Assembly: GCF_000002075.1 (NCBI RefSeq)
Contig: NW_004797374.1
Location: 502,693 to 566,692 of the forward strand
Reading direction: 5' to 3'
From: Aplysia californica
Lineage: Eukaryota
Length of the DNA: 64,000 bases
Made by a program: the position numbers and the translations under genes. Below are positions 19,495-48,742 of the stretch, piece after piece. Position 1 is the first letter of the stretch. The number at the start of each line of letters is the position of its first letter. Under the pieces are notes generated by a model. It searched no databases. It was not told the origin of the DNA and saw only the letters and a list, made by a program, of their open reading frames with translations.

Positions 19495-21454
19495 GTTGTT
19501 GTTGTTGTTGTTATCGATCCAGCAACAGCTGGGCTCTCGCCCTTCTGTCCAATGCCATGTAGTGATAAGTGCAGGTCTGCTGCAGTTGCTGTAATGTTCC
19601 ATAGAGTGTGTTGTCTATGTTAGGTCTCGGAGGGAGAAGGATGCTCCACAGTCTCATATGCATAGTCACACAAGGGACACACTGGGGGAAGTTCCGGGTT
19701 TATACTGTTCAGGTGGAAGTTGAGCTGTATAAATTATGTTCTGTTCGTAGGCGGAAGATCGTGGTCTGTTTCTTTCTCTGAAGGCGGTTGATATTGTCAT
19801 TCCTTTTTATTGTAGTCATATGTTTGAAAACTGCTCTGCCTGTCTTTCCCAGGGCCCATCTGTTCATCCAATCTTGTTTGTTGTTGGTTTTGATGATTTG
19901 TTTTGCAGTGTTGTATGAAGCTGGAGTGTCGGGTTGTTCCTGTCTAGATCCCCGTTTGGCTAGTGTGTCTGCTCTGTCATTTCCAGGTATGTCTGAGTGT
20001 CCGGGGACCCACTGCATTACTAGGTTGATGCCACAGAATGTTATCAGATGATGGGATCCAAACAGTATATGGGTCAAATCTTGGCTTAGATGATGGTCAT
20101 TTTCTATGGCTTGTAATACTGATAGTGAGTCAGTGAAAATCACAATTTTCTGTGCTTTTCCAGGGTGAGTGTCAAAAACTGTGCGGAGATGGTACAGTGC
20201 TGTTTCAATTGCCATCATTTCTGCATCGTAGTTGTTGCATTTCTCTCCACAGGCTGCATAGATCTCATTGGAACTTCCATCTGGGTACTGTATTAGTATT
20301 CCATATCCGGCCTTGGTTGTGCCTTTGAATGCTGAGCCGTCCGTATAGACGTGTATCCAGTCATCTGAATAGCTGTCGATTGTTTGATGTGATGCAAGCA
20401 TCAGCGTCACTGGGTCTGAAGATTTTGTGCTCTTGTCTTTGAGAGATGTTGTAATGATTGGCTTTTTTAAAGAAAGGTGGGGAGGGATGTTTTGATTGAC
20501 TCTTTTGGTTTCTTTTCTGTTTTGTGGTAGATGGTGGCTCTCCATTAGTTCTATGATGTTATGCATGATTGACTTTTGTTGAATTCGTTTCTTTGGTTTC
20601 CATGTTTCTACTAATTTCCTGTTTGGGTGGTTGGGGCACATTCTTTTAGTTCTTTCATGTAGCTCCAAAACTGCTCTATCTCTGCGGATTCCCAGGGGTT
20701 CAACATTTGCAAGGATTTCGCACGCGGCGGTAGATGTGGATCTCATGCCGCCATTTATAAAACGAAGGGCATTGTTTTGGACCTTGTCAAGGGTGTTGCA
20801 AGTAGTTGTACTGCACATTGTGAGTAGGCTATTGCTGTATTCCAGGGAAGATCGGACATAACCCAGGTATAGAGCTCTCAAAGTTTGTTTGTCTGATCCC
20901 CATGAACTGCTTGCGAGTTTTTTTTAAAGTTGGAGTCTTTTTTTAGCCTTGTTCCTTATGTTCTCCACTTGGCTTTTCATGGTTAGCCTATGGTCAAGTT
21001 TGATTCCTAGGTAAGTTGGATGTTCTTCTTTGGGGAGACTTTCATTTCCTATCTTTAGTTTGAGATTTTCTTTGGCTGCTTTATGGCTCTTCGTGAAGAT
21101 GGTGTATACTGTTTTCGTGCAGTTTATTTTAAGTTTCCATTTCTGACAGTAATTATGGAGCCTCTTGAGGTCTTCATTTAATTTCCCTGCTCCTACTATC
21201 GTGCTGTGATGTGTCTGCCAGAGAGCAAGATCATCGGCATAAAGAGTCTTTTCTGATTTCAGCACGTTCGTTACATCATTAAAGAAGACCAGGAACAAAG
21301 TGCAACTCAGACAGGAACCTTGAGGTAAGCCTTCCTCGAGTACTTCTCTTGACGAGTGGGCATTGTTTACCTTGGTTTCAATGTTTCGATCCGACAGAAA
21401 GAACTTGACCCATTTGTAAAGTTTGCCATGTATCCCGAGGTCCATCAATTTCAT
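19495..21454 (-). mobile_element. 5'-truncated non-LTR retrotransposon with RT, RNase H and C-terminal Cys motif (I/Ingi/Nimb-like group)
   Basis: GLPQGS and LYADD; RNase H YTDGS / FTDSLS / WVPGHSDIPGNDRAD; (AAC)n tail; 12-bp TSD GTGAAAATAGAT (19483-19494, 21455-21466); frameshift near 20920. Confidence 0.95.
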
Positions 21455-22161
21455 GTGAAAATAGATAAAAAGCAAAAAGATGCGGTTTCTTGGGAGAGCA
21501 TTGAGGATTAGTTAATAGAACGAGGAAATGAAATGGGGCAATGGTGAAAGAAGACATACAATAAGTTGAGTAATGCGAAGTATTAGGAAGACACCAATTT
21601 TAATTCAGTTTCTACAACAGTCGAATCGACATAAACGCATTGAACATTTGCTCTCACTGAAAAAATAGAAGGCAAAAGAGGTAGGCGTAGATGGCCAGTT
21701 GACCAATAACAACTTATACAACTTGAATTGTGGGTGACGGGGAAAGCATACGATATGTACCGTAATATTAATATGTTTGTTTCTTTTAGAGCACCCTCAC
21801 AAAGAAATGAATAGTGAACCATGATCGACGATGTCTGTTTCAGGTCTAGTTCTTCGTGAAGATGATCTCAAAGCTTTCATGTGCTTTCATATATGGCTCA
21901 CATATTGTTCTATTTGGCGAGTGCAAAGGGGGGGGCAGGAAATATATTCGGTTTTGAAAAGAAAAAAAATATGGTAAAGAGTGACCAAGCAAAGATTAAA
22001 GAAAACTTTCATGATACGGTGAGGGAAGCGCAAGAGCAGGCGTGGGCCTATTTAGATCAACGAGCTTCTACTATGGTCCTTGTGTATTTGACATCACGAC
22101 GCAATAACCACGTCCGTTGCGGCTTCTCCTCCACTCAAGGTCAAAGTCAAAGGGTATTGTG

Positions 22162-22804: not shown

Positions 22805-22971
22805 NNNNNNNNNNNNNNNNNNNNNNNNNNNNNNNNNNNNNNNNNNNNNNNNNNNNNNNNNNNNNNNNNNNNNNNNNNNNNNNNNNNNNNNNNNNNNNNN
22901 NNNNNNNNNNNNNNNNNNNNNNNNNNNNNNNNNNNNNNNNNNNNNNNNNNNNNNNNNNNNNNNNNNNNNNN
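22805..22971. other. Assembly gap
   Basis: N run. Confidence 1.
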
Positions 22972-24859: not shown

Positions 24860-27109
24860 TGCTTGACCCACCAATAGCCAATGGAGATCGTCAGATGCAA
24901 GGAGAGCCTTCACGACCAAGAGGAGACAGACTCCCACACTCAGCACAATATAAAAGAAATGCGGGGCACAGGGAAAAAAAGTTTACTCTGAGGAGTGGTC
25001 AGGCGTGTCTCAAACCAGCTCCTCATGGAGACAGTTAGCAGGAAGACCCTGGTGTGGACGCTGGAAAGGAGAGATGAGCAGCTATGGACATGTGCCGTCT
25101 GCTATGATTCTAACTCTGGATCCAAGTAAGATGCTTTACAGTAAAGTCCACGAATCTCGAATACGAAAATCACGATTTCTAGGGTATCTTGAACATAATG
25201 CTGGGTCCCGTTTTAGTCCCAGTGTTTTCTTTGTATTGACTTTATGGAGTTCCCGAATATACTTGTGGCACTCGAATCTCAAACAAATCCACTTCGCATT
25301 CTCAACTCAAGACCCAGCTTTACAGCCATTTCTGGCTGCAAGTAGGTGTTTCTTTGTTATTGTTACAGCACAGCACATTACGGTGGAACTCGGATTCAAC
25401 GAGGTCGCCGGGCCTGACCTAAAATCTCGTTGAATCTGAGTCTTCGTTATAGCAAACACAAGGTTTTGTGTAGATAATTACAGGCACTGAGCAAGTAAAG
25501 TATAAAGAGAAGTCACAAGTAGTGCCTGAAATGCCTCCATATTATGAGCTGTGTAAAAAAAAAAAAACCCCAATTCGTTCAAATGCACACGCCTGTGTGA
25601 TCTCGCTTGTTTACCAAAAAGTTGTATTGCTGTGTAGAGCCAAGCATACGGCAACTTTTGATTCCATAGACCAGCGCACAATTCATTACGTAGATCTACG
25701 TCAAGACTAGCTTATCATTGTAATAATGATCAGTTGCCGAGGGGAAAAAAATACTGTGACGCGTTAATATCTTTGCGGCGTTCAACGCTAGTCCCCCCCC
25801 CCCCTCCCCGATACGCACATACAGTCACCACGTGTGCATGCCGCCCATCCGACCCCGACACACACCAGAGTAGACACGTGCACGTACTAACAACTCATGT
25901 GTTGATATTAAAGAAGACCGCTGATTGGTCGCATGCAATCGGCTAAGAAGTGAATAATGGTTCACGATGCAGGTGCAATGGATGGTTTCCGGGAATAGAT
26001 AAAGTTCATTCTTGGAGAAAAATGAGCGAAGCCACGTCTGTGGGGACTGTTCACCCTGGAAGCAACCTCCTTGAATCCGAGCTCGCTGATTTAAGTGCTC
26101 GTTGAATCCGGGTTATTTTCATTGATTTTAAAGAAGGAAAAAAACGGGGAATCTATCTCCTCTCGTTGAATCCGAGTTCCATTGTATAATACGTGGTCCT
26201 GATCTTACCATGAGAGGCTGGAGAAGGAGGGGACGGCGAAAGTGGGTTGAGGAGTGATGCTGACCGCACCGCACGACTGGCTCGCCACGCGTGTAATCAT
26301 GCTGTGGGACGCATGCGGTGCAGACGGCAAGATGCGTAACTTTCTGTAAGCCAATGAAATGAGAGGAAAGAAATGACTGGGAGTCGGCTGTGCACACATA
26401 AGAACCCTTCTTTGCAAGAGCCTCTTGTTTCAAACTTTCCAAATCAAGGGAGCTAACCACATTTTATTGTTCTTTTTTTTACCTCCCTTGATTTTCTCTT
26501 TTTTAAAATTTGTATTTGGGACTTTCACGGACATGAAGAATTACGGAAATCTCAAACAATATTTCCAATCCCCGGTGAATTCGAGTTACTTGTGTTTGAC
26601 TGTAATTCTCTTGTCAAATTTCTCACAGCCATTGTTGAGTTTGGTGGTGTGACTTTGGACACTTTATTGACTAAGAGATAAAAATATATAAGGCAAGGCA
26701 ATGGTTGTTTTAAGAAGACGTGTCTAATTTCACAAAAGCTAGCTCTAGTTCAAGTGTGAATAGCTGAATATTAATTGAGATTGAGAGTGTTAGCGCAGGG
26801 TATTTTCCCTACCATTGCCCATCCTCGTGGTGGTCTCCTTCTTCACATGCCCCTTTGCTAGAGCTCAGGGAGGTCTGACTATACCGTACATGGTCGTTTT
26901 CAAGCACAAGGGGCTATCCTGAAAAATGCTGCTTTGAGAATATTGATGGTGCAGTTTTTGGACCCTTGTTCAGTTTCTTTAAAAAAGACAAGGAAAGTTT
27001 TCTCTATTACTTATTATCAAAACAAATATATATACAAATGAATCCAAACTTCTCCAGTAGGGCAATGCTCACTTTTGGTGTTGGTCAAGTTTTCTGGAAA
27101 CCCTGAAAT
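24860..27109 (-). ncRNA. Putative spliced, highly structured non-coding RNA downstream of TERT (exons 27109-27073, 26918-26813, 26343-26209, 25060 to at least 24860)
   Basis: Four acceptors and three donors (GTGAGC, GTAGGG, GTAAGA); exon 26918-26813 has stops in all three frames; several helices form only across splice junctions. Confidence 0.6.
25381..26184. mobile_element. Tc1/pogo-type MITE (CAGTGGAACTCGGATTCAACGAG)
   Basis: TIRs and TA TSD; copies at 28800-29602, 35667-36671, partial ~62925-63260. Confidence 0.9.
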
Positions 27110-32679: not shown

Positions 32680-34708
32680 TTAAAGACAAACAGCCCTGTA
32701 CACTTCTGACAGATCCACAATAGTGAGGTCCTGACCTTTATGTCTTTGACGCTCTTGTACTTGAAGCTGCTTGATCAGCAATTTGTACATGCTGTCGTGC
32801 ATTCTCAGTTTATACAAGAACGCTCTGGTGCAAAGTCTCTTTACTATTAGTGTGCTGAGAGGGAAGGAGACCATGCCTTGATCAGAACTTTGTGACTTTT
32901 GCAGTTTTTGCACCACAATCTTCATAAACATATGAGGCATTTCTTGAATCAATTTGAGGAAAAAGTTTGGGTTGCTTTCAATTCTTTGCTTCGGAGGAAG
33001 TTGCTTAATGTGAGAATGAAATTTGACTGCAACAAGCATAAAAATGTGCAAAACATTTGTTATGATGCTTGTCTCTGTGTTAATGTCTTTATCAAAGAGA
33101 ACAGCATAGCTCTTGGGTCTCAAGTACCATGACAACAGTTTCTTTAGCTGTAGCCCGGGATGATTGGCAAGGCACAAGGAGACAGTATCTCGCACAGTTA
33201 TGTTCTTGTTGTTGGAAAAGTCCACCAGAATGTTCAGACTTCGGCAGTCAATGGCCAAGCCACAAAATGTCAACGGTTCAGAAGGCTTTAGGGTGTGAGC
33301 ACGGCCAAACTCAGGGTGGCTGTAGTCAAATGTGGCACAACATTTACGGAGACTGCTCTTGCAGTTGAACTCTGGGACACCCTCGATCATCATAGTGAAG
33401 AAAGCTTCAGCCCTTTTTCTGCTGGGAGACACAAAGAGCATATCATCTATCATACGGACCAGAAAGTTTGGTTTTCTCTGAAACTCGTAAAGTTTTACTT
33501 GATCCATATATCCGTAGTAAAAGCTGCAAAGGATGCTGGAAATGCTAGATCCCTGTGGAATACCCATGGACTGAACATAGTGTTGTCTCCCAAGCCTTAT
33601 GACATTGGCAAAAAGCAATGCTTGAAGTTTTTTCAAAAGCACTTCAGATGAGACAGAGAAGGAATGAACAAACTGAGCACCTTGTCTGGTTCTACATTCA
33701 ATCTCTGGTTTGTCAGAGCTTTGGTAATAGACCACTTTAGATTGCCCATCTGACTGAATATTTCTCTTGTAATGGTAAATGTGGTATTTCTCCTGACTGA
33801 GAAGCTGGTTTTGGACCACGCTGTAGAGCAAACAAGGATTGATTGTATCAAAACATTTCTCAATATCTATTTTCACAAAGTACAATTGTTTAATAGACTT
33901 ACTTTTCACATAATCAGTAAATGCTTTCCATCTGCAGTGAATATCATCTATGCTCAGAATTGATGCTCCTAACATCACAGGATGTTGATCTTTGAGCCAG
34001 CGGAGAGCTAAAAGTAGCGCTTTGAGGTGCTTGTTTATGGACACATCGTGAGATTTTTGAGACATATTTACTATAGGTCTTAATGAGGGCTTTTTCAGAA
34101 GGAATCGAACAGTACACACTCCCAAGCAGAGACCTTTCTGTCTTTTCTCCTGGACCCATGCTTGTGGCACCAGCTTCAGGCCACACTGTTTTATGAAATG
34201 TGCACAAGACTGCTGGTGCAATCTGTGCCACGTCTTTTTTCGAAAGAAAAACAATCTTTTCTTGTGCGTCGTAGATTCAGTGACATAGAAGAAAGACTGT
34301 ACCAAAGGGAAAATAACTTTCATCATGAAAAAGTCAACTGCTGACGACAGCAAAGTCCTTCTTTTCCTGTGTTCTTCAGCTTGAATCCATGGGATCACCT
34401 TCACTTTTATATTGGCACACAAGTAGTGTAAAGACATTGTTCCTTTGAGCTGGATGGACAAAAATGTTTGCACATGCTTGAGGAATGTATTAAAGTTCCT
34501 TTTATTTCCAAGAGCAGATTTTGGCACCACTTTCAGGAATATGCATCGTATAAACAAGAATATACTTTGCACTGGTAAAAAGTCATCAGAAAGATTCATG
34601 TTCTTCTTCGCCCCGTTTTTGGAGGCACAACATGATTCTTTTGCGCTGAGGGAGATGTCAAGGGCACATGGACAAAAGTGTTTCAGCAGAGTCCAGTACG
34701 GACATTTT
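32680..34708 (-). CDS. TERT: Telomerase reverse transcriptase, large terminal exon (CP, QFP and T motifs, RT domain, CTE)
   Basis: AG acceptor at 34709-34710, then KCPYWTLLKHFCP (CP motif), in frame with ORF 32680-34599: FFYVTE...FFRKKTW (T), LRPIVNM (2), YFVKIDIEKCFDTI (A), GIPQGSSISSILC (B'), LVRMIDDMLFVS (C), FCG (E). All three catalytic Asp present. Confidence 0.97.
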
Positions 34709-35666
34709 CTGAAAAGGAAGAATAAAATAAAACATGTTGAGCAAATTGTCTCATAAAGTTCTAATGTTGGGATTTAAATGAAATTTCTATTCAGTATCAA
34801 GTACTTAATCTCATCAAATTGACAAGTTTATCTGCCGTAAAGACAATCAAACAAAGTTAAGATTTTACCAATGAATACAATTCTCATGTTTACTTGACCC
34901 AATAAAATGAATAAACTAGTATCAAAGAAAGAATCTTTGTACCGAACCCAAGTCCTGTAGGGATAAACGCATCAGGGAAGATCAGGAGATCTCAAGAGAC
35001 TCAATATTAAGTCAAAGGCAGCACAACATACAGTGGTGCTGGTACTGTGGTGGGTTGTCGAGCCATAGTGTAGACCAGGGGTCTCAAAATTATGGCCTGT
35101 GGGCTAATTAAAACCTGCAGGACAATATTTTGCAGCCCCTACTTGACCTCACAGTTTATTGTTAGTGTTAGTGCGGGCTGCACATTTTTTACACATGTAC
35201 CTTTTTGCCAAGGTGTTTCCCAAGATCATTTATTTTTTAAAGATGTGGCCTACCACGGCTAAGGATTCAGCACTTATATTACCTTATTGTGTTGCAAGTG
35301 CCGTAAAACTCTTACTAAAACCAAATAGCTAAGGCTCATGACAGCTTCCAATGGTGTTTGTTAACAACTTGTAAACATAATTTTCAAATTGTACTTAAAA
35401 AAAATACTGTCAACATTTTAAAAAATTTATAGAATTCTTAATGCTGCCTAGGCTCCTCCAGATTTTACTTCCAGCAACTCCTATGTAATTTGAGTTTAAA
35501 ACCTCTAGTGTAAACCTACTTTATCCAAGATTGTGTGTTGTAGATCTAGTGAATTAGATTAGAAGTGTAAGAACCAAGACGAGAAAATAATGATAACTTA
35601 GCTAACAACTGATATAAAAACATATAATTATTATCATAGACTAAAGCCATCAGTGCTGTGCAAGTA

Positions 35667-36671
35667 CAGTGGAACTTGGATTCAACGAGGTTGCCGGGCC
35701 TGACCTAAAATCTCGTTGAATCCGAGTGTTTGTTATAGTAAAAAGGAGGTTTTGTGTAGATAGTTACCTGTCCCTGTCGTCTTACGCAAGAAAAATTCTG
35801 AAATTATGCAAAGTGAGCCCAAAAATGTGAAATTATCATTATGCAATTCTGTTAATTTTAACAAAGAATGATAAAGGAAAATAGTAAAAAATTATGCAAA
35901 AAATGATCAAATTTTGCTAAATTATGCGGGGTGCATAAAACCACGGGAACAGAATTACAGGCACTGAGCAAGTAATGTGTAAAGAGAAGTAACAAGTGTG
36001 CCTGAAATGCCTGCATATTATGAGCTGTGCAAAAAAAAAAAAATACTGGTTCAAATGCACGCCTGTGTCATCTCGATCGTTTGCCAAAAAGTTGTGCTGC
36101 TGTGTAGAACCTAGCATATGGCAACTTTTGCTTCCATAGACCAGCGCACAATTCATTATGTAGATCTACGTCAAGACTAGCTTATCATTGTAATAATGAT
36201 CAGTTGCTGGGGGAAAAAAAAGACTGTGACGCGTTTGTATCTGCGAGGTTCCACGCCCAGACCCATGGTCCCCCCCCCCCACCCACCCCCCGACCCGCAC
36301 ACTCAGTCACACACGTGTGCAGGCCACCCATCCGACCCTGACACGCGTTAGAGTAGACATGTGCGCATGCCAACAACACATGTGTTGGTATGAAAGAAGG
36401 CCGCATGCAATCAGCAAAGTGAATAATGGTTCACGATGCAGGTGCAATGGATGGTTTCTGGGTATAGATAAAGTTCATCGAGGGAGAAAAATGAGCGAAG
36501 CTACGTCTGCGAGCGCTGTTCACTCTGGAATCGACCTCATTGAATCCGAGCTTGCTGACTTTAAGTGCTCGTTGAATCCGGGTTATTTCCATTGATTTTA
36601 AAGAAGAAAACAAACGGGGAATCCATCTCCTTTCGTTGAATCTGAGTTCTCATTAAATCTAACTTCCACTG
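35667..36671. mobile_element. Tc1/pogo-type MITE with a nested small MITE
   Basis: Colinear with 25381-26184 plus a ~185-bp insert. Confidence 0.88.
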
Positions 36672-36853
36672 TACAATGGAAAACATTTTAGCTAGTGCTG
36701 TAATATTGCATTAACATTTGTCTACTTCGAGCGATCCCATTTCTATTAATTATTTCCATCTGTTTTTAAAAAATCTCAGTGTATTTTGAATATTTCACCA
36801 CAAGAGGACATTCACTAAAACTGTCCCTAAAGGGCTGCAAAGTTCTGAAATAT

Positions 36854-37254
36854 ATGTGTCACGACGCGGTGGAATCAGGCTCTCGTCAATTTTTGACATG
36901 TGGAGTCATTGGTATCATTTTAAAGCTTGTTCATTTGTCTTGCTTCCGGGGGAAAAAATACTCATCTATCATGAATAGAAGTCTAGATATTTGCTATTGA
37001 AGGAGGTGGGGGTCGCCTGGTTTCAGAGACTAAATTAGCAAGAAAATGGCTGCCAAAATTTGGTGACTTTTAAAGACTTTTCAAAGTCCTTAGAAACTGC
37101 AAATCTACATCACAGAAATATGTTTTTAAATGGACCTTAGAGGTGTTGAGACAAAAAATGAAAATTCGATAAAAATTGTCAACGTACAGAAAAATGCCGG
37201 TTTCTTCGATTTCATTATATTGACGAGCGCCTGATTTCACCATGTTTCACATAT
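36854..37254. mobile_element. MITE of the ATGTG..GGAATCAGGC family
   Basis: Terminal inverted GAATCAGGC / GCCTGATTTC. Confidence 0.75.
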
Positions 37255-37371
37255 GAGGTTGATAGTTTCCTCATTTGATTGATTTGATTGCGTTTAATGA
37301 ATAAAATAATCAAAAGAGTACTGGAGGGTCTGTATGGCAAAATATTCTAAATCAACTAAAATATATCATAC

Positions 37372-37435
37372 CTGTGATTTTCTACCATTTCAGTGACAAA
37401 TGGAAGCTTGCTGTCCTCTCCGCTGTAAATGAAGT
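37372..37435 (-). CDS. TERT: TERT penultimate exon
   Basis: ttttgttttcAG ... GTATGA; encodes (D)FIYSGEDSKLPFVTEMVENH(R) and joins KCPY in phase, matching vertebrate LFLELLGNHAQCPY. Confidence 0.85.
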
Positions 37436-37498
37436 CTGAAAACAAAAAAGGTAGTTGGCTGTTTCAAAATTATTATTGTGATGAAATTATTTATGTAC

Positions 37499-39185
37499 CT
37501 TTCACTGCTCAGTCAAGAAAGTGCCCTAGAAATCAGTAAAGAGCTTGCATAGCGGGTGTCGCATTCAACGAGGTCACATTCAACAAGAAATCGGCTCCAA
37601 CGAGGCAATCGTTAATTCCAGATTTTTACCTCTATATCTCTTTTGTAAATGTACGTCAGCTCCAACAAGGTTGCAAACAGGCCAAAGTCGCTTTCAACGA
37701 GGTCGCGATAACCAAATAAAAGCAATTAGTGGCCCCAAAAGCGTAGAATTTTTCTCCTTTCTCTCTATCTCATGCTAAGCAGCACAAAGCAAGGCCCATC
37801 CTCGATTCCTAACACATTGCATTGCTAGATCCAGTAAACCTCCTACAGTGGAATCCTGTTATAATGAGAGGGAGGGGACCGAAGCAAAATGTCCGTTATA
37901 GCAGGATTCTCGCTATAAGGGATCCAGTAATAAATTCAAGGGAAACTGTAAAGTAGGCCTAATCTATGAGTTTAATGTTCTGTTTTTCCTTTTGCTATCT
38001 CCCCTGATGATGATTTTGTTTCAACATGACCTCTAGGTCTTACTTGATAAAAAATCGAATCAGGTTTGTTTCTCTCTAGCGCTAGGTCTAGCGATGTGGA
38101 CTGACAGCTCGGCGTTGGCGATCAGAAAGAAAGGGCTCTGGGCTAACTTGCCCGCTGTGTTTTCCCCCCCACCCCACCCCACCCTGTGGTGCATTCTGTC
38201 TGCTTGCGCACGTCACACATTCAACATTCGCTCCATCCATCACATTGCTGTGACCTCTCCATCCCCGCATCCGAGAAGTGAGAGGCATGGCAGGCCTTGA
38301 TAATCTAAACTGGCCTATCACGCGATACGTTCTACTTGTCTGTGCATGCCACACCTTCCCTACTCAGTTGCTCCGGCCTTCATTGTTGACGCACATGGGC
38401 TCTCCTATTCTTTGTTTCGCAAGATCAGCAACAAGTTTCTCAACTGGCGAGGTCTAGCATTATGTATAATTGGTCTATGCACTGTACACAGCAGCAACAA
38501 TACTCCGCTATAACCGACTCGCAAGTGTGTCTGATAGCGCTATAGCAGTATTTTGTTTACAAAGTTAAATAGGAGAAAAAAACGGGGTTTTAGAATAGTG
38601 CCTTTATAACAGACTTCTCGTTTTTTCCGGACTCGTTATAAGTGGACTCTAGACCAAGAGGATGGGCGAGGGTTAGCCTACAGTAGGGACAGGAGTCAGT
38701 GGGCTGTGTGAAACTGGGTGAACTCTGGACGGGTAGGTCTAGATCAAGACCTTCATTTTTTTTCAATTGTCTTATTATCTTACCCTGATCAGAAAATCCA
38801 AGCTCCTGCCTTTACTTTACGTAGATCTAGGCCTAGATGTGAGAGGGTATGTTTCCACACGAGAAGTGTTCCGGTAAAAAATATTCTAATTAAAAAGCAG
38901 AAATGACGGTCAGAACACAGTTCAAACGCATACACACTGATGCTGTTTGGGATTTTCGTAATCTGGGGGAACAACTGTTTTAATTACTGGTATTGGTACA
39001 TCGTGTAATATAATAACTTGTCTCCTTTCTTTTCTTTAGCCTTGGTCACGTTTAACGAGAAGTCGGGTCCAACGAGGACAACAAACCTGTCCCGGCAACC
39101 TCGTTGAATGCGACACCCACTGTATTCCTTTGATTAAATTATTTTTGCTGGGATTCTTTAGGTGCACTTGGCTGCTTTTGAGCAG
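37499..39185 (-). pseudogene. Decayed TERT exon (VSR-like region) split by a MITE
   Basis: Removing MITE 37550-39122 joins 39185-39123 to 37547-37499: LLKSSQVHLKNPSKNNLIKGIQALY*FLGHFLD*AVK, with AG acceptor, GTACAT donor and phase 1 matching the next exon. Confidence 0.5.
37550..39122. mobile_element. MITE (CAGTGGGTGTCGC) with a nested CAGTGGAATCC MITE at 37846-38650
   Basis: Outer part matches 27902-28513; inner part matches 44295-45104. Confidence 0.85.
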
Positions 39186-40089
39186 CTGCAACAAAAATAA
39201 AATGAAAGAAAGATGTTTCCATTAATTAAAGAATTAGACAGATACTTGCCCTATACTATGGGTTGAAAGATTTAATCAGGGTCCCCATGTACGAAAACCA
39301 ACAACAATTGGAGAAACTTAATGGAGCTCAATTCATGAATGATTTAAATTTTAAGAAACCCTTAATTCAAAGTAGATTTTCATCAGTATTAAAAATTTTG
39401 AGTGACAAAAATGTGATTTTTACAGGGTAGAGTGTTGTGGGGTAACACAGAAAACACAACATACATTTTATACATTTTTACATGTTCAGTATTTTTATTA
39501 TTTTTATTTCTATACACTTACAGTTTTTATTTAATCGTTCTTGAAAGGATGTGGTATGGAAATTCAGCCATGTGTACTCAGAGTTGTCTGTGGAGTAATC
39601 AAAAGTACACTTCATTAGTGTTCAATTAGCTGTACTATGATAGGAAGAGAAATAAATGCTAATTAATTAGACTATCAAAGTCAATGATAAAAAGAGAAAA
39701 TTGATAACTTTTGCTATTATGGCGTGTCATGGTAATGCAAGCTAGTATAGAGCCAGAAAAACTCCTTCCAATGACCCAAGCATGTGATCCTGAGAACTTG
39801 AACTAGAGTTAACCATACACAGCCAAGTCTATATAACAATTTTAAGGTAATGGCTTAAAAAGGAACTTGAATTTTTGTTTAAAAAACCACAACCCCCCTC
39901 CTCCAAAACAAACAAAACAAACCCCAACTTCAACATTATGAAAAGATGTAATGAAAACAATTCTTCACTTCAGTTTCAGTGCAAAGAAAAAAATTACACC
40001 TGGGAGTAAATATGTGTCACGACGCGGTGAAATCAGGCGCTCGACAATTTTTGGGCATGTGGAGTTATTGATATCATCTGAATTGCCTG

Positions 40090-40635
40090 CATCATCATCA
40101 TTGCCTTTCTCAAGGCCACAGACGAACACTTTCCACCTTTCTCTATCCTGGACTAGCCTCTTGACGTTATTCCACGTCTTCCCACTTTCCTGTACATCAA
40201 TTTCTGTAATTCTTCTCCAGGTTCCACGCGGTCTTTCCCTTGATCTTTTACCCTGTGGATTCCAATTCAACAATTTCTTTGTTATGCAGCTGCCTGACTT
40301 CCTGAGAGTATGTCCAATCTATCGCCACCGCCTTCTTCCTACCTCATCTCTGACTGGGATCTGTCTTGGTTTTTTTTAAACACTTACTCGTTGGTGACCC
40401 TGTTTGTCCATCAGATCCTCAGTAACTTTCTTAGACACTTGTTCAAGAAAACCTGGATCCTCTTATGCAAGTCTGTGATATGAAAGCAGCCTGTGCTTTT
40501 CCAATGCGGGACTTTATTATTTCAGCGCCTGTTCCTCCCTCTCTGTCAATTATACTCCCAAGATAGCTAAATGATTCAACGTCTTCTAGTTCTAGTGCAT
40601 TTCCTTCTGGTGTGACCTGCTTATTTGGCTTGCTT
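40090..40635 (-). mobile_element. RTE-clade LINE 3' fragment
   Basis: LNWNPQGKRSRERPRGTWRR; (GAT)n tail; same family at 57480-58160, 61110-61482, 61856-61949. Confidence 0.85.
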
Positions 40636-40646
40636 CCAAAGAAATA

Positions 40647-42012
40647 CAGAGTGATCCAAAAAAACCTGTATGCCTACAACTTTTTTTGTTAATGTTTTCC
40701 CTCTACACTGAAGTTTTGCACTTCAAATTTGTACAGAACATTTGGAAGTCAAAAAGAATTGGTCTGATATTCATTTTAGAAAAATCCATTTTCAGCTGTG
40801 TCTCCATTTTTGTAGCATGGTGCACTAGTTCGCATTAGGCCTACCGCTAAAAAATCCCAACGATTGCGCCATTTTGCAAACTGCAGTAGTCTAACAGGCC
40901 AATAGAAGTTTGCAGATAGTTTTTCTCAAGTTTCCTTTGCTTGTTGTGATCATGATTAAGATTAGTAAAGAGTAGAGAGCTTTTACTTTTTGTATTGAAC
41001 ATTTCCTCACCACCGACTGATTTAGTAAGTGTCGCACAAGGTACAGAAATAATGTTAAAGTAACCATAAGGACTTCTTTGATGTCATGAGTGGAAATGGT
41101 TTCTCGATTAGTACCTGTAGAGAATCAGAGCTAAAAAGTCCCAGACAAAATGACCACTTGAGGAGAAACACATGTCTAGCATCTGCACCCCTTTAAACTT
41201 CACCAGGGTGCAGAATTCTGTGGATGGGCCCCATGATGAGATGTCTGTCCGTAGACAATGTCTGCAGCAATGACTTTCCTACATCTCAACTGTCCGCATT
41301 CTCAAGGCAGATATTCTATGACTACCATTTTCCCATTCGCGAAACTATCAGAGGTCATAACAATGTGTTTTTGATTCCTCTATCGTCTTGAAAAGAGTGG
41401 ACATTTCCTCTGTGACATTTTGGTTCCTTGGCAAAGCCCATTCACCTTTCAGCTTATATCAACTCCACAAATGCTGTCTACGTATTTGAGCAACCTCACT
41501 CCTCCCCCATTTGTCTCTAGAAATAGCTCCATACTATAAGGTGTGCAGTGTAAGTGGCTTTGAGTACTCATGGTTGAGTGGATCCTTGTGTTGGCCACAA
41601 TTGAACATTACCAACGACACGTTCAAATGTGTCGAGTCCAAATGAGGACATATTGACCTTTTGGTTCTTGGAATTCCAGAATTTGAAAAAAAATGTTTCA
41701 CTTTGTAGTGTAGGAGATTGTTTAAAGGTTACAGGGCTGGAAAATTTAGATTTTAAAAATAAAAGGAAAGGAAAAAATCAAACGAGTCATTTCATGACTT
41801 TCCTTTAAATTGGTGCACTTTGCATTTTTAGGTGGTTTTTATAAAAGCCATTTCCGTTTTCAAAAATAAGTTTCTTCTTTGTGAATTTTATGTCAAACAA
41901 ATTCCTTTTGAATGAATGATAAATGTTCCAAATTACAACATTCTAGTACAAATTTTGTGCGAGATATTATTTAGAAAAAAGTTTGTACAGTTGTTTTTTT
42001 TGGATCACCCTG
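40647..42012 (+). mobile_element. Degenerate Tc1/mariner-superfamily transposon
   Basis: TA-CAG(A/G)GTGATCCAAAAAAA TIRs; decayed WFxDEAHFHL-like transposase remnant near 41420. Confidence 0.7.
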
Positions 42013-42568
42013 TAAGTACCCACATTGTGTTTGAAAACGTGAGGTTACCTGGTTTCCGTATTGAAATTAGCTAGAAAATGGCCGCTAAAGTTTGGTCCAA
42101 TAGCCAAAGAGTCTTTGAAAACTAAAACAATGACATTTTGTGCCTTTAATCAAGTTTTTCAATAAAATTCACAAGGAAGCGTTTTTATATTGACATAAAA
42201 GAGGTTGAGCCAAAAAATGAAAATTCGACAAATATGTTCAAACTGGCGGAAAAATGCCAGTTTCTCCGATTTCTTTATTTTGACGAGTGCCTGATTTCAC
42301 CACCCTGCCTCACATGCGTTTTCACTGTAGCAAGGTTCCATAGCAAGTTAAAAATCATGACATACACCTTTGCGATCGATGATAATTTAAGTGAATAAAA
42401 TTCACCGCGTTGATGGAGCAGATGGAGAGAATCTTGAGAAATAATCTATTTGTTCAAATATATAGCTTGTCTTGTCTTACTTTTTACCTTCTTTCTTCTT
42501 CTCAATCGCATCACACTTGAAGTCTGGTTTCTGTCATATACTGGGCCAGCCTGCTCAGTTCACATGTC

Positions 42569-44197
42569 TAGCATCTGCGTTTGTTGCATTTTTTGTCTAA
42601 AAGTTGCCACAAGTTGCCATTAATTTTCAAGCTTTTAACTTTCTGTGACGACGTATCTATATAAGGAATATGTTGATAGAAGTCACTTAATCTAAAGCAC
42701 TAGAATTTCTTGTGCTCTGTATTTTAAGCATCCAGAAGATCTTTTGCAGCCACACAGAGTGTAAAAACGTGAAAAATAGAGGTTTCACAACAGAATGAAA
42801 TCAAAATTAGAACAGCAAAAATTAACAAATAGGGCGTATGTCCACCTATCCGAAGACTGGTCATTTTAACCTTAAATGTTTGTAAGTTTTAAAAAAGTAC
42901 AGAATATTACATCATGTAAATTATGGAATCACACACAGTGTGAGTATAGTGGAAACCTGATATAACAGGGATGGTGGGAGTAGAGAAAAAGTCCTGTTAT
43001 ATCCGATCCCTGTTAAATCAGAAAGGCGAGGAAAGTAAGCATTTGTGGACAAATCCAGCTGTACTTACTCATGGGTAGTTGCCCTTGCCACAAGTACCCA
43101 CGAACAGGGGTTTTGGCACTCACTTTCTCCTTGCCTCCTTAAACCACATCAGAAGAGCTTGGTCCACAGCATCTGCATCGGGTAGTCTCATCTTCTTTCG
43201 ATCCCGATCTTCTCTTTATCCTTGATAATAGTGTGAATCGACCCTTGTGGAATGTCGAACTGACGACAAATCTTTGCCAGTGGAACTTGCTTTTTGTCAA
43301 CAGCCTGGATTATTTCACATTTTTGTCAAATGAAAGGCATTTTCTCTTGCGCTTGACATCGTTGATGACACATTACACGTGCATGTTGCTAGGTTTCAGG
43401 CCAGATCGAGGTCTGCAGCGCACCGCAACCCTCTCTCACTTCACACGCTGCGTGTGCTCGCAGTGGCATGTCTTGCGTGGGCTTGCTCCATCACTGCGTT
43501 ATTTTCTCTCTCTCTCTCTCTCTCTTACTTTTTACTCATTGTTAACGAGCCTTTGTCCCTGCTATAACCGGTTGGGCTCCGATGAGGCCCTGTTATTGCC
43601 GATAACTTTTAATAGAGACAAAGAGTAGGAAAAATTGGGGATTTTTAAAATCGCTGTTATTACCGGATCCCTGTTATTACCGGGCCTGTTATATATGGTT
43701 TCCACTGTATTCAGTTTTGGTGGAAACACACTCTAACATAGCTAACACATTTATGTATTTAAAAAAAGGTAGACTACATTAAGCTATATCACAAAAAAAA
43801 AAAGGAAAAACAGCACATCAGAACAATAACAAAAAAAATTAAAAAAATTTACCCACCAGCAAATTAAAACACAACAAAGAGGGAAACATGAAAGAGAAAA
43901 GGCAATATAAATAGTATGTAATGTACTTTTTTTCTTCACTTGAAAATTACAAATCAACGTGGTGTCAACAAGTGAGAAAGAGATAAAGTGAAGTGAAAGT
44001 GAAAAGTAACCTTTCTTTCTAAAAGCAGAGGTTTGTTCCTTTTTTTTCCCCGCCCCCCCCCCCCTATTTTTCGACTTTTTATTACTCGGCTGTGTTTTTT
44101 TGTAGTTGTTTTTTTTTGTTGAAAAATGCCAAAATCGCGGCAGCGATTCACTGACCAAAAATGCCAAAAATCGCTGCCGCAACAAACGCAGATTCTA
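42569..44197. mobile_element. DNA element with TAG(C/A)ATCTGCGTTTGTTGC TIRs and a nested MITE (42947-43707)
   Basis: Inverted termini at 42569 and 44197; degenerate ~9-bp TSD ending ATGTC. Confidence 0.8.
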
Positions 44198-44294
44198 TAT
44201 TATGTCAGCCGTACAGCTTCTCTTGTAGTGTCAATGGGGTTGGCCACATTTCCTGTCTCAGGTTGCTTTATGAATGGTTTTGTTATATAAATTA

Positions 44295-45104
44295 CAGTGG
44301 AATCCTGTTATAACGAGAGGGAGGGAACCGGTGTCAAATGTCCGTTATAGCAAGATTCTCGTTATAAGGGACCCAGTAATAAATTCAAGGAAAATAGTAA
44401 AGTAGGCCTAATCTATGAGTCTGGTTTTCGGTTTCTTTCTTTTTGTAATCTCCCCTGAGGATGATTTGGTTCAACATGATCTTACTTGATCAAAAGTCGA
44501 ATCAGGTTTCTTTCTCAAAGGCTAGCGATATTGAGAGCTCGGCGTTGGTGATCAGAAAGAAAATTCTCTAGGCTAACTCGCCCGCTGTGTTGTCCCCCAC
44601 CCCACCACACCCTGTGGTGCGTTCCGTCTGCTTGCGCACAAAGAAACATACCACACCCCGCCCACGTCACACATTCACTCCGTCCATCACAGTACAGCAC
44701 TATGACCTCTCCATTCCCGCATCGGTGAAGTGAGAGGCGTGGTAGACCTAGATAATCTAGACTAGGCTGGCCTATCACACGATGCGTTCTGCTTGTCTGT
44801 GCATGCCACACTCTCCCCACTCATTCAATCAGGCCTTCATTGTTGGCACTCGTGGGCTCTCCCATTCTTTGTTTCGCTAGATCACCAAGTTTCTCAACTG
44901 GCGAGGTTTTACATTAAGAAATAGCCTATGCGCTGTGCACAGCAGCAGCTGTATTACTGCATAACCGAATCCAGTGTTTGTCCTATTGCGCTATAGCAGT
45001 ATTTTATTTACAAAGATAAAGAAGGGAAAAAACGGGGTTTTAGAATAGTGTCTTAATAACAGACTTTTCGTTGTTTCAGGACTCGTTATAAGTGGATTCC
45101 ACTG
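44295..45104. mobile_element. Tc1/pogo-type MITE (CAGTGGAATCC..TTATAACGAG)
   Basis: TIRs and TA TSD. Confidence 0.88.
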
Positions 45105-45287
45105 TAATGTGATTCCCTTTATCGCAATCAGTAAACTTTGCAGAGCAGATGAAAGTGAAAGCCTCATAATATTAAACTGTAATAGAATAGACCTGTGATT
45201 AATCTTTAAAAGAAAAATATTTGATAGATCAGTTAGAAATCCTGCTTGCTACTACTGAAAAAAACAAAAACAAATTTGTAGACTTGC

Positions 45288-45339
45288 CTTCCATTGTTCT
45301 GTTTGATGAAGAAACTCTAAGGCAGTCATTATGGCCACT
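45288..45339 (-). CDS. TERT: Putative TERT 5' exon (GC donor); ATG at 45294 gives M-E-D in phase with the 37435 exon
   Basis: Strong acceptor (T-tract + cAG), AAG|GCAAGT donor, ACA-ATG-G start context; an out-of-frame upstream ATG at 45329. Confidence 0.5.
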
Positions 45340-47121
45340 CTGAAAAAAAACAACACAAGTCATGTTTCAAGTCCTCGATCAAACAACCAGAAGTAGACAA
45401 ATGTTTTTTGTTAACTGTTACTTTAATTTTAATGGATAAAAGTTCACCAGTACTATTAATTTAGCACAAACTATCATTTACGGTACTTAATTTTCTTATT
45501 TTAAAGTCATTACAATTTTATCGACCTTTCACCGGGGGTGAGATTTGCTAGCGTTGGCTATTCTCATCCGGTGTGAAACAAAACCTGTTTTTCCTAATTT
45601 CTGAATACTGTCTATCGGTGGGGATGATCAAATTTACAAAAACAAAGAAAAAATGATGTTGTAGCACTAAAGTAAACATATTTGGTCGTCTAAAAAGATG
45701 CTACACGGCTATTTCGAGCCAAACTACGCCGGTCGCCATTTTGTTTTGCCCAAAAGTTCTCGTTACTCCTCTCTCTGGAATGTTTGTTTACACTGGTACT
45801 GGCATCACAATCACGGTGAACACACACCAGGTGAGAAAAGCCAAAAGGCTCGATCTCTCACCCTGGGTGAGTGGCCTACAACTGCGCTATTCTCACCTGA
45901 AGTGACCTAATAAAAAATATGGTGGGGGGTTTCAGGGGGGCATGCACCCTGAATTTTACCATAATTTGATGTTTTGCAGTTGTTAGGTTTGAAATCTTAG
46001 CTCGCCGCACATCAAACGTATTGATAAAGATCTAGATGTAGAATCTAGATCTAGATCTAGATCTAAGCCCAAATAAGGGGGGTGGGAACTACGGTACCGA
46101 AAAAGCACCTCTATTTCTCTGTCTCTCTCCCCTCTTTTTCCGACTCTCTCTCTCCTCTGTGTATCACTCACCCTCTCTTTCTCTTTGTCTGTCTCTGTCT
46201 TTCTTTCTCTCCCACCTACTTTCCCACTCTATCTTTCTCTCGTTCCCTTATTCTGTCAACTGGGGCATGTAATTATTTCCCCCTGTTTTCTACCACCTCC
46301 TCTCTCTCTCTCTCTCTACTCTCTCTCACCACACACACACTCTACCGGATCTGGGCGCTGAAACTTTCCGAAATCACAAAAGATTTCCCCTACTGGGTCT
46401 GTAGATCTATACTTATTGATTTTGTTCTCGGTTACCGGGTCTGTACACACTTCGTTATTTATTATGTTGGTTGGGGGGGGGGGGGGGGGGGGGGTCGCTC
46501 GTTACAGTACTGTAGTCCTTTCCCTTTATGGAGTCTACTCCCCCTCCCCAATTGTCTTATTCTCCTTTTATATTTCTTCTAGCCTGCATTTCACCCCTCT
46601 CGGTCTCTCACCATGCTTGGCCGTCTCTTATTGTTCGAAGATCATCGTCATTCAATTCATTGTTGGGGGAAGTTGAAGTTCATGGCCATGGGAGCTTGCT
46701 GGGTGCATCGACTGATAGAAAAAAAAAAGTGGACTATCCTGAGAAAATGACTTAAAACGCGGGCCACCAGCTCTTGTAGACCAGAGTCGCTTCGGCATCT
46801 AACTTAGACTTCAGTGATCAGAGGGAGCCTGATGAAGGGCAGTTTCACCCTCAGTTTGAACACATCGCCTCATCATAGTCATAGGCCTAGTCTTTGCCAA
46901 GAAAGTAAATATTGAAAAACATAATGTTAAAGAAAGCAAACTCAAGCAGTAAAGAAAAGAAAAGCCCGGAAATATTTTGTTTCGCCTTGTTTTTCACCAC
47001 AACAAATTAATACTTTTACCATGGATTCAACAATACCTGTTATAATATGTATGTCAATGTACAGATGTGTTCTTATTATGTGTTTGAGATAGGCCTACAG
47101 TGTTCAAATGTGTTTGTGTGT

Positions 47122-47182
<61 letters not shown>

Positions 47183-47524
47183 TTTTATGATTGTCTTCAG
47201 TGGCTACTGTGAGAAGCTGGTTATCTTTTTATTTTACATTATCGTATTTTATTTCTTTTGATGATCAAGGTTTTCTTTTTTTGGGGTGGTTAGAGGGTGC
47301 TCTGGTGTGTTTTTCTCCTTCTTTCCTATCAAACATCTGTCATCCTAATTTCTCCTCCTTTTTTTTGTATTTGTTACTCTCTTATGTAACGCCTCTAATC
47401 TTCAGCACTTATATGACCTTATTGTGTTGCTAGTGACGTAAAACTCTTACTGAAACTAAACTAAAAGATTTTCGTATTGTTTCACTTTTCATATATATGA
47501 GTCAATGAGAATTTCAAAGTATGG

Positions 47525-48560
47525 TAGGCTTTACTTTTCTTTACTTTTATCCGCCGCTTATACCCTTTCTTTCGGGTGTCGCGGGAAGAAAGAGACGTCT
47601 CTCTGTCGCCAGCCGGAGAGCTTGGGTCAGGGGGATGCCGTGGGTGGTTAATGTTTCCCTGATTCCCTTTATCCAGGTCTTTCTCAGTTGCCCTCTAGCC
47701 TTGTTGCCATTGAATTTTTGGATGTAGGCACGTTGTGCGGGATAGTGTGTTGGTAATCGTAGATGTCCGAACCATTTGATTCTTTGGTGTTGGATGTGAT
47801 GCATGACATCATTTGTGCCCACCTTTTCTCGGATTACAGAGTTTCTAATTTTGTCTCGCCTGGTCTTGTTTACTGCTTTTCTAAGGCATCGCATTTCACA
47901 TATTGTAATTCTTTGCTCTAATGTCTTGTTCGTGGTCCATGTTTGGCATTGATAGGTGAGTGTTGGGATGAATAATTATGGGGTTGATCATTTTGAGTTT
48001 GTTGTCATGGAGATGTTAGGATGTTTCAGTAGTGGAGTAAGCTGGTAACTAACATTATTGGCCTTTTGTACTCGTGTTTCAATTTCTCTGTTCAGTCGCC
48101 CCTCCTCTGTGAATATATATACTTCCGAGGTACTTAAATTCTTTGACCTGTCAGAGACTGTTGTTGTTGATGTGTATCCTGAGTGGTTCTGGCTTTCTGC
48201 TTACTTTCATTGTCTCTGTTTTGTTGATGTTGATCTTCGTGTCGTAGTTGTTACATTCTTCATTTAATCTGGTGGTGTGGTGTTGGAAACTTCATTCATC
48301 TTTGTGCGCCAGGCTTTGGTCATCAGCGAAGAGTAATTCATTCTGTGTTGGCCTCTTTTGTAATTCTATCCATATACATGTATATATGATAAATAGTAGT
48401 GGTGATAGGACACAACCTTGTCTTACTCCGGATGTTGTGTCGAACCATTCTGTGAGTCCCTTTGATGTCCTTACTGTACTTATGCTGTTCTCGTAAATGG
48501 CACAGATGTTATCTAGAAGTTGGCCTCTTAGTCTTACAGTGTAGTTTTCGAGTTTTCGAG
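47525..48560 (-). mobile_element. RTE-like LINE 3' fragment
   Basis: MRCLRKAVNKTRRDKIRN...IKWFGHL...; upstream GVRQGCVLSP and FADD remnants. Confidence 0.85.
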
Positions 48561-48562
48561 TT

Positions 48563-48671
48563 CGAGGAAATAGAGAGATTTTTCATCAGGCTCTGGCAGT
48601 TCTAGAGTAGGCTTATGGTTTTCCCAGTACCCACTTTGGCTGCTATCAGTGGTAAACGATCGGTACACAGT
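48563..48671 (+). pseudogene. Duplicated fragment of enoyl-CoA isomerase exon 2 plus its donor site
   Basis: About 90% identical to 49993-50101; TGG>TAG stop; 5' end abuts an RTE-like insertion. Confidence 0.9.
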
Positions 48672-48742
48672 ATGGAAGGCACTACATTAAAATGACTTTA
48701 TTTTTCACTGCAAGTCGTTGTATTTCTTACACTTCAGGCATA

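Follow-up and report, generated by a model that had tools for sequence, protein, structure and literature searches.

The question raised by this locus is whether the telomerase reverse transcriptase (TERT) of the sea hare Aplysia californica has lost its TEN (GQ) domain, and whether the protein that is left can still serve as a telomerase. Human, yeast and ciliate telomerases depend on the TEN domain for repeat-addition processivity and for recruitment of the TPP1 type. To our knowledge, the natural telomerases without it that have been investigated to date all come from insects and nematodes, in which the RNA partner is unknown or the telomeres are unusual. The gene in question lies on the minus strand of a 64,000-nucleotide stretch of the Aplysia genome (RefSeq assembly GCF_000002075.1, contig NW_004797374.1, positions 502,693 to 566,692), the whole of which is referred to here as the window and supplies all coordinates given below for Aplysia. 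We consider it highly probable that this gene is the single-copy, orthologous TERT of Aplysia, that it encodes a complete catalytic ring made of the RNA-binding domain, the reverse transcriptase (RT) domain and the C-terminal extension (CTE) with neither a TEN domain nor a linker in front, and that its product likely works as a telomerase.

The ring is encoded by an open frame of 675 codons (34707-32683, minus strand; stop codon at 32682-32680), in which Pfam recognizes Telomerase_RBD (PF12009, E 2.6e-31), RVT_1 and TERT_C (PF21399, E 4e-23). The frame is 100% identical to the corresponding part of XP_005095494.3, a RefSeq protein of 728 aa annotated as 'telomerase reverse transcriptase [Aplysia californica]'. 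A genome-wide count of TERT copies, which had been suggested in an earlier note made from the letters of this DNA, was carried out as a six-frame search of the whole 927-Mb Aplysia assembly, and the present locus is its sole TERT match. The motifs of the RNA-binding domain are readable, the CP motif as NHRKCPYW and the T motif as FFYVTEST..RLFFFRKKTW, together with the QFP motif and a TFLY-like piece. In an alignment of 99 TERTs, all invariant columns are kept in Aplysia, including K258, R263, D334 (motif A), Q438-G439 (motif B'), D474 (motif C) and K508 (motif D), as is D475 of motif C, which is nearly invariant in the same alignment. An AlphaFold2 model of the protein, with this alignment as input, reached a pLDDT of 92 and a pTM of 0.91. 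Its top Foldseek matches are structures of human TERT (E ~1e-43; template-modelling (TM) score 0.80-0.84), in keeping with the closed-ring fold, and the TERTs of Tetrahymena, yeast and Tribolium rank lower (TM 0.60 for Tribolium). The Aplysia protein possesses the RNA-binding domain, RT motifs 1, 2, A, B', C, D and E, and the C-terminal extension that characterize the TERT family; the TEN (GQ) domain, which is not required for membership of the family, is absent. Taken together, the Pfam matches, the identity with RefSeq, the invariant residues and the model indicate that the catalytic ring is real and intact, and thus that the earlier note was right to describe a ring with all of its catalytic residues in place.

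The TEN domain was sought in proteins as well as in DNA. The Pfam model TEN_TERT (PF11474; cut-off 25 bits) gives no match in the TERTs of Aplysia, Biomphalaria, Bulinus and Candidula. It exceeds its cut-off in the chiton Liolophura (40 bits), the oyster Saccostrea (30.6) and the caenogastropod Nucella (28.2), all three of which also carry the CP motif, remains below it in Mya (14) and in Sepia (23, in an N-terminally incomplete gene model), and gives none in Pomacea. On alignment, the GQ block is plain in the long mollusc TERTs, including those of Pomacea, Mya and Sepia (NVLTxGF .. PNS .. W..LLSRIGD..M.YLLE .. Y.QLTG.P.Y, followed by a variable linker), and the heterobranch TERTs start only at the TFLY-like piece shortly before the CP motif. 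From this alignment we built a mollusc TEN hidden Markov model (HMM), as well as a second version from which two caenogastropods were removed; in the genomic locus of Pomacea, the caenogastropod-free version still recovered TEN as five separate exons, with E values from 4e-8 to 3e-3. Against all six translated frames of the Aplysia window, neither version found a TEN domain (best E 1.1-1.7, in unrelated stretches), and the full version found none in the Biomphalaria locus (best E 2). Remnants of the TEN domain or linker upstream of the ring were also considered and rejected: the HMM and tblastn with eight long mollusc N-termini gave best E values of 0.2-1, with nothing near that level on the minus strand of 34709-48700. 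This interval, the 14 kb between the ring and a divergent gene of the ECH family, is gap-free and contains no N. The earlier note had reported no intact coding exon for a TEN/GQ domain upstream and had named tblastn with mollusc N-termini as a check; the empty HMM searches, the eight N-termini without a TEN match upstream and the interval free of N all agree with it. At the level of the whole genome, four queries (PF11474, a 200-aa TEN from the cDNA contig L004, the full-length Pomacea TERT and a mixed profile) retrieved the ring only, a result that means 'not found with these queries', the control genomes being prokaryotic. Stand-alone TEN-like proteins of 110-350 aa were likewise not found in a set of 5.8 billion proteins.

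The distribution of short and long TERTs among molluscs suggests when the domain was lost. Short relatives of the Aplysia protein, at 40-45% identity, are those of Candidula (695 aa, partial), Biomphalaria (733 aa) and Bulinus (712 aa), and of one more contig (658 aa). When 1.8 billion representatives were searched with a profile, two further short TERTs (P0071 and P0040) came up, together with long mollusc TERTs that cluster look-up assigned to Pomacea, Nucella, Liolophura, Saccostrea, Mya and Sepia. The seven short TERTs of heterobranch type, four of them named (Aplysia, Biomphalaria, Bulinus and Candidula), group as one clade in a FastTree phylogeny (support 100), and the stem of this clade measures 0.77 changes per site; pairs within the clade are ~40-45% identical, and their synonymous sites are saturated. 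These data are compatible with one old TEN loss on the common stem of the heterobranch-type TERTs. Since the TERTs of Nucella, Liolophura and Saccostrea score above the TEN_TERT cut-off, the loss is specific to this short clade and does not extend across the phylum. The independence of the heterobranch loss from the ecdysozoan cases, which the earlier note had put forward as an independent loss in a non-ecdysozoan animal, is supported by the presence of TEN_TERT in other molluscs and its absence in four heterobranchs.

The same clade differs in a second segment, the insertion in fingers domain (IFD), the length of which was taken as the distance between the aspartate of motif A and the glutamine of motif B'. 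Every TEN-bearing mollusc has 114-116 residues here, and for 64 TERTs with a long N-terminus the median is 116 and the range 103-126. The seven short TERTs have 95-99 residues (98 in Aplysia), apart from that of Biomphalaria, which carries a low-complexity insert and has 106. In the Aplysia model, strands 360-372 and 375-383 still form a TRAP-like hairpin, which is followed by another strand (397-406), and the alignment places the residues absent from the short IFDs between the hairpin and the latter strand. The segment between motifs A and B' was therefore shortened by ~18 residues on the same heterobranch stem. In human telomerase, IFD-TRAP packs against TEN and TPP1 (2021-2022 cryo-EM structures), and hence trimming of the IFD alongside TEN loss makes structural sense. 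The trimmed IFD also argues that the TEN domain has been gone for a long time.

The Aplysia gene is made up of four exons. The small ones were located by tblastn with two RefSeq queries, the current protein and the older model P0204 (744 aa), and their borders were read from the DNA. Exon 4 (34708-32680, minus strand; 2,029 nt without an intron; acceptor ttttcag) opens with the second half of the CP motif (R/KCPYW), goes on to encode QFP and T, RT motifs 1-E and the CTE, and closes with the stop codon; in spliced RNA contigs the boundary of this exon falls exactly at 34708. Exon 3 (37435-37372, minus strand; 64 nt, ..YFIYSGEDSKLPFVTEMVENH-R) is identified by tblastn of the RefSeq protein as well as by RNA contigs. 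Exon 2 (39587-39522, minus strand; 66 nt or 22 codons, D-NSEYTWLNFHTTSFQERLNKN-Y), which is frame-neutral, is identified by RNA contigs, tblastn of the 744-aa model and alignment; it encodes the TFLY/CP2-like beginning of the RNA-binding domain, with its acceptor cAG at 39590-39588 and GTAAGT as its donor. A 5' extension of exon 2 (39588-39624, minus strand), with an ATG at 39615-39613, exists only in the current RefSeq model. Exon 1 (45288-45369, minus strand; 5' end provisional) is taken from the older model, and contains a first ATG at 45363-45361 and a second one at 45294-45292 in strong context (..ACA ATG GAA G); its donor is of the GC-AG type (G/GCAAGT at 45287), in the strong context usual for such donors. 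In-frame stops occur shortly 5' of each candidate ATG, namely a TGA 9 nt above 39615 (39624-39622) and a TGA 6 nt above 45363 (45369-45367) in Aplysia, and a TAA 15 nt upstream of the TERT ATG in Biomphalaria. As to the introns, intron 3 (34709-37371, minus strand) is packed with very high-copy repeats and holds no TERT-like coding sequence. Within intron 1 (39588-45287, minus strand), the part 39625-45287 contains an open reading frame (ORF) resembling the tail of a long interspersed nuclear element (LINE) and repeats resembling short interspersed nuclear elements (SINEs), with no TEN or linker homology and no N.

Transcripts help to decide between the alternative 5' ends. Logan RNA contigs from two independent studies (X5 record 10, 261 nt; X7 record 16, 292 nt) join 39589..39523, 37435..37372 and 34708.., and thus spliced TERT transcripts exist in which exon 2 is included. 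Both contigs depart from the genome at 39589/39590 and continue for 52-62 more 5' letters beyond an ..AG junction, so that the RefSeq ATG at 39615 is absent from them, and the older 744-aa model suits them better than the current RefSeq start does. The ..AG junction fits an exon ending in ..GAAG, by which the identity of exon 1 is supported but not proven. The protein is therefore one of 721 aa (MED-NSEYTW.., from the ATG at 45294) or of 744 aa (from the ATG at 45363), the 728 aa of RefSeq being the alternative; the conserved 'YTW' of the RNA-binding domain follows 6 residues after the former start and 29 after the upstream ATG. With regard to the gene model of the earlier note, its 64-nt exon (37435-37372) and its acceptor at 34709/34708 are real, but the 66-nt exon at 39587-39522 had been overlooked. 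The 699-aa protein predicted from that model has to be given up, since the RNA contigs contain the extra 22 codons and 699 aa corresponds to an in-frame form that skips exon 2. The exon proposed there at 45339-45288 is indeed used by the older RefSeq model, in which, however, it is read unspliced up to the ATG at 45363, with no acceptor start at 45340.

The history of the locus can be read from its introns and its neighbours. The Biomphalaria locus (L005) follows the same four-exon plan as that of Aplysia, in that exon 1 (ATG GTA TTC AAA ACA G/gt) is followed by two small exons and a giant exon of 2,055 nt (L005:13543-15597) beginning at R/KCPYW; the giant ring exon is also found in two further short-type contigs. 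The Pomacea TERT (L006) has ~29 coding exons, compared with four in Aplysia and Biomphalaria, with TEN in exons 1-6 and ~19 introns within the ring. Two introns are common to Pomacea, Aplysia and Biomphalaria, one in phase 1 after EKFSKY / ERLNKN / EKLSTD plus one base, and one in phase 2 within the R of NHR/KCPY. Both flank exon 3 of Aplysia, in which two of the three introns in the 5' part of the gene are ancestral. In addition, exon 1 of the Biomphalaria TERT lies 1.8 kb from the divergently transcribed MINDY4, and the Pomacea TERT is likewise head-to-head with MINDY4. The synteny in Biomphalaria and the shared introns indicate that the heterobranch TERT is the ancestral gene in place, and a retrocopy at a new locus, which was also considered, is ruled out by them. 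On the heterobranch stem, the introns up to the CP motif were kept and all ~19 ring introns downstream were lost; recombination with a partial reverse-transcribed mRNA (cDNA) would be the likeliest cause of such a 3'-biased, all-at-once loss. On the same stem, the eight TEN and linker exons gave way to a very small new first exon, which contributes M-x(1-4) and one base.

Telomeric repeats and telomerase RNAs provide the context in which such an enzyme could operate. In the Aplysia assembly, (TTAGGG)8 has 259 overlapping matches versus 1 for a reversed control, and telomerase RNAs have been described by Logeswaran et al. (PMC8480181, supplement) in the heterobranchs Elysia timida, E. cornigera and Bathyberthella antarctica. 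The Aplysia TERT would pair with an H/ACA-type telomerase RNA and synthesize TTAGGG repeats. Without the TEN domain, anchoring and recruitment would fall to the ring and to other factors, and repeat-addition processivity would probably be low or differently achieved. On the sequence evidence, a working TEN-less telomerase, and not a paralog or a pseudogene, is most likely. An Rfam scan of the whole window revealed no RNA family, including no match of any kind in the region 24860-27109, and the window does not contain the 10-nt template word TAACCCTAAC, although a shorter template could escape such a word search.

Several observations weigh against this conclusion, and they are considered here together with the alternatives on which they bear. 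TEN is fast-evolving and the heterobranch stem is long, so that sequence searches could miss a TEN that has diverged strongly or is encoded elsewhere, and the whole-genome queries had no eukaryotic positive control. Moreover, exon 1 depends on the older RefSeq model and the ..AG junction, the 5' end of the mRNA is provisional, and the frame through 45339-45288 is open upstream of the second ATG, which leaves some room for an upstream coding exon spliced at 45340, although none with TEN similarity was found. Such considerations would favour the view that TEN persists but has been overlooked, either in far-upstream exons or in a separate gene supplying it in trans, as a split telomerase. The Pfam score, which is weak in Mya and lacking in Pomacea, illustrates how fast TEN diverges, and the hairpin at 360-383 and the strand 397-406, the human counterpart of which works with TEN, are kept in the Aplysia model. 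This view is nevertheless a very unlikely one. The four whole-genome queries and the two local HMMs are empty, though the HMM does recover the five Pomacea exons; in the older RefSeq model, exon 1 continues without a splice to an ATG that is closely preceded by a TGA; in Biomphalaria there is only 1.8 kb from MINDY4 to the TERT ATG, again with an in-frame stop upstream; the search for stand-alone TEN-like proteins was blank; and the IFD is trimmed in 7/7 short TERTs. A re-wired heterobranch telomerase, in which the trimmed TRAP is kept because a diverged stand-alone TEN or an unrelated substitute anchors and recruits in trans, seems to us just as improbable; if it were true, sea hares and pond snails would offer a natural system with the TEN function separated from TERT.

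The reading of the gene as a working TEN-less telomerase also has to be weighed on the side of function and descent. Telomerase activity in heterobranchs is a prediction from sequence and context. No MINDY4 is present on the Aplysia TERT contig, so that the synteny argument rests on Biomphalaria, and the MINDY4-type matches on two other Aplysia contigs (C317 and C894) imply that the upstream side was later rearranged or that the assembly is broken there. A repurposed TERT, whether a paralog or retrocopy or else an ortholog with a non-telomeric role, in an animal whose telomeres are kept by another mechanism, would be in line with a ring that is free of introns, as in a retrogene, with the long heterobranch stem branch, and with the retrotransposon-type RT ORF that lies downstream within the window. 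A repurposed paralog was one of the two outcomes envisaged by the earlier note; it is not supported, in view of the single genomic locus, the ancestral locus in Biomphalaria, where MINDY4 is head-to-head with TERT as in Pomacea, and the two shared introns. Repurposing in the wider sense is very unlikely as well, given that seven lineages have preserved all catalytic and RNA-binding motifs, that TTAGGG arrays are present, and that telomerase RNAs are known in other heterobranchs. Finally, the poly(A) RNA-seq run X21 has zero reads on the TERT exons, which suggests that expression is low or tissue-restricted, and contig depth on these exons is low in other RNA runs (2-5). A recently disabled pseudogene with a ring that still looks intact is nonetheless extremely improbable in view of 675 stop-free codons in DNA of ~39% GC, transcripts that are correctly spliced in both studies, uninterrupted frames with this architecture in Biomphalaria, Bulinus, Candidula and a further three contigs, and the retention of all invariant residues.

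The surroundings of the gene deserve a brief description. Its divergent neighbour (48692-50089, plus strand) encodes an enoyl-CoA hydratase/isomerase domain (ECH_1, E 1.7e-6). The TERT introns contain very high-copy repeats (35200-39200 and 40000-40400), for which the summed contig depth reaches ~1.7e5 in RNA-type runs at 35200-35399 and 35800-35999. A SINE-like unit recurs (38088-38354 and 44515-44820), as does an ORF of LINE-tail type (39965-40273 and 47547-47894); all four stretches are without a Pfam match. Downstream of TERT, two adjacent long ORFs of 390 and 183 aa occupy 19709-21475 on the minus strand; they include a retrotransposon-type RT motif, GLPQGSCLSCTLF, which gives a weak tblastn match to the TERT motif B', and the region is probably a LINE copy. 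Runs of N, which are gaps or masked sequence, occur at 3650-3825, 22805-22971 and 56102-56286, all of them outside the TERT gene and its upstream region. In the Pomacea canaliculata genome, the GenBank protein PVD30073.1 (1,630 aa; CM009762.1, L006 10001-37429) combines TERT with a concentrative nucleoside transporter (Nucleos_tra2 domains), and is most likely a gene-model fusion of adjacent genes.

Part of this picture had been published before. Lai et al. (2017; PMC5405514) reported that the TERTs of Aplysia and Biomphalaria are without the GQ motif, intron-poor and without any intron position in common with human TERT, that arthropods and lophotrochozoans all lack GQ, and that CP is missing as well from Aplysia, Biomphalaria and Crassostrea. 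The lack of GQ/TEN in Aplysia TERT is thus an already known core fact, published in that study, and the short protein is in RefSeq; our full-text searches turned up no other paper describing TEN loss in snails or telomerase in Aplysia. Our results differ from PMC5405514 in that an oyster, a chiton and a caenogastropod pass the TEN_TERT cut-off, and that the CP motif (NHRKCPYW) is plainly present in Aplysia, and the published generalization that lophotrochozoan TERTs lack GQ and CP is corrected accordingly. New here are the clade-specific nature of the loss, the presence of CP, the ancestral locus and two ancestral introns, the disappearance of ~19 ring introns, the trimmed IFD, and a RefSeq start that lies outside the RNA contigs. 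This is a refinement of moderate weight, which will interest mainly telomerase specialists.

The Aplysia TERT can be compared with several known enzymes. The TERTs of Tribolium (PDB 3DU5/3DU6/3KYL) and Bombyx mori resemble it in having no TEN/GQ, a ring of RNA-binding domain, RT and CTE, and few or no introns. In overall fold, however, the Aplysia model is closer to human TERT (TM 0.80-0.84, versus 0.60 for Tribolium). The Aplysia protein also retains the CP motif, the TFLY-like piece and a TRAP-like hairpin within an IFD of 98 residues, and thus does not belong to the minimal type of Tribolium and Bombyx. In Tribolium, the IFD is a short helical pair, and we know of no telomerase RNA from this insect, in contrast to the H/ACA-type RNAs known in slugs related to Aplysia. 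Human TERT (PDB 7QXA, 7TRD, 7BG9) is the best sequence match (E 2.4e-88 over residues 43-709) and has all RT and RNA-binding motifs in common with Aplysia; it has in addition a TEN domain (~residues 1-195), a long linker and a full-length TRAP, the Aplysia protein beginning at about human residue 350-390. The nearest TEN-bearing relative is the Pomacea TERT, the ring of which is 31-32% identical and which shares the two introns around the pre-CP exon. Pomacea has a TEN domain, a long linker, ~29 exons and an IFD of 116 residues, whereas Aplysia has neither TEN nor linker, four exons and an IFD of 98. Pomacea telomerase has been reconstituted in vitro (PMC8480181). Thus, in a vertebrate-like ring, the TEN domain and part of the IFD that faces it would have been lost on one branch, and heterobranchs would offer a cleaner comparison than the systems studied so far, with TTAGGG arrays, H/ACA-type RNAs in slugs, and the reconstituted TEN-bearing enzyme of Pomacea as a control.

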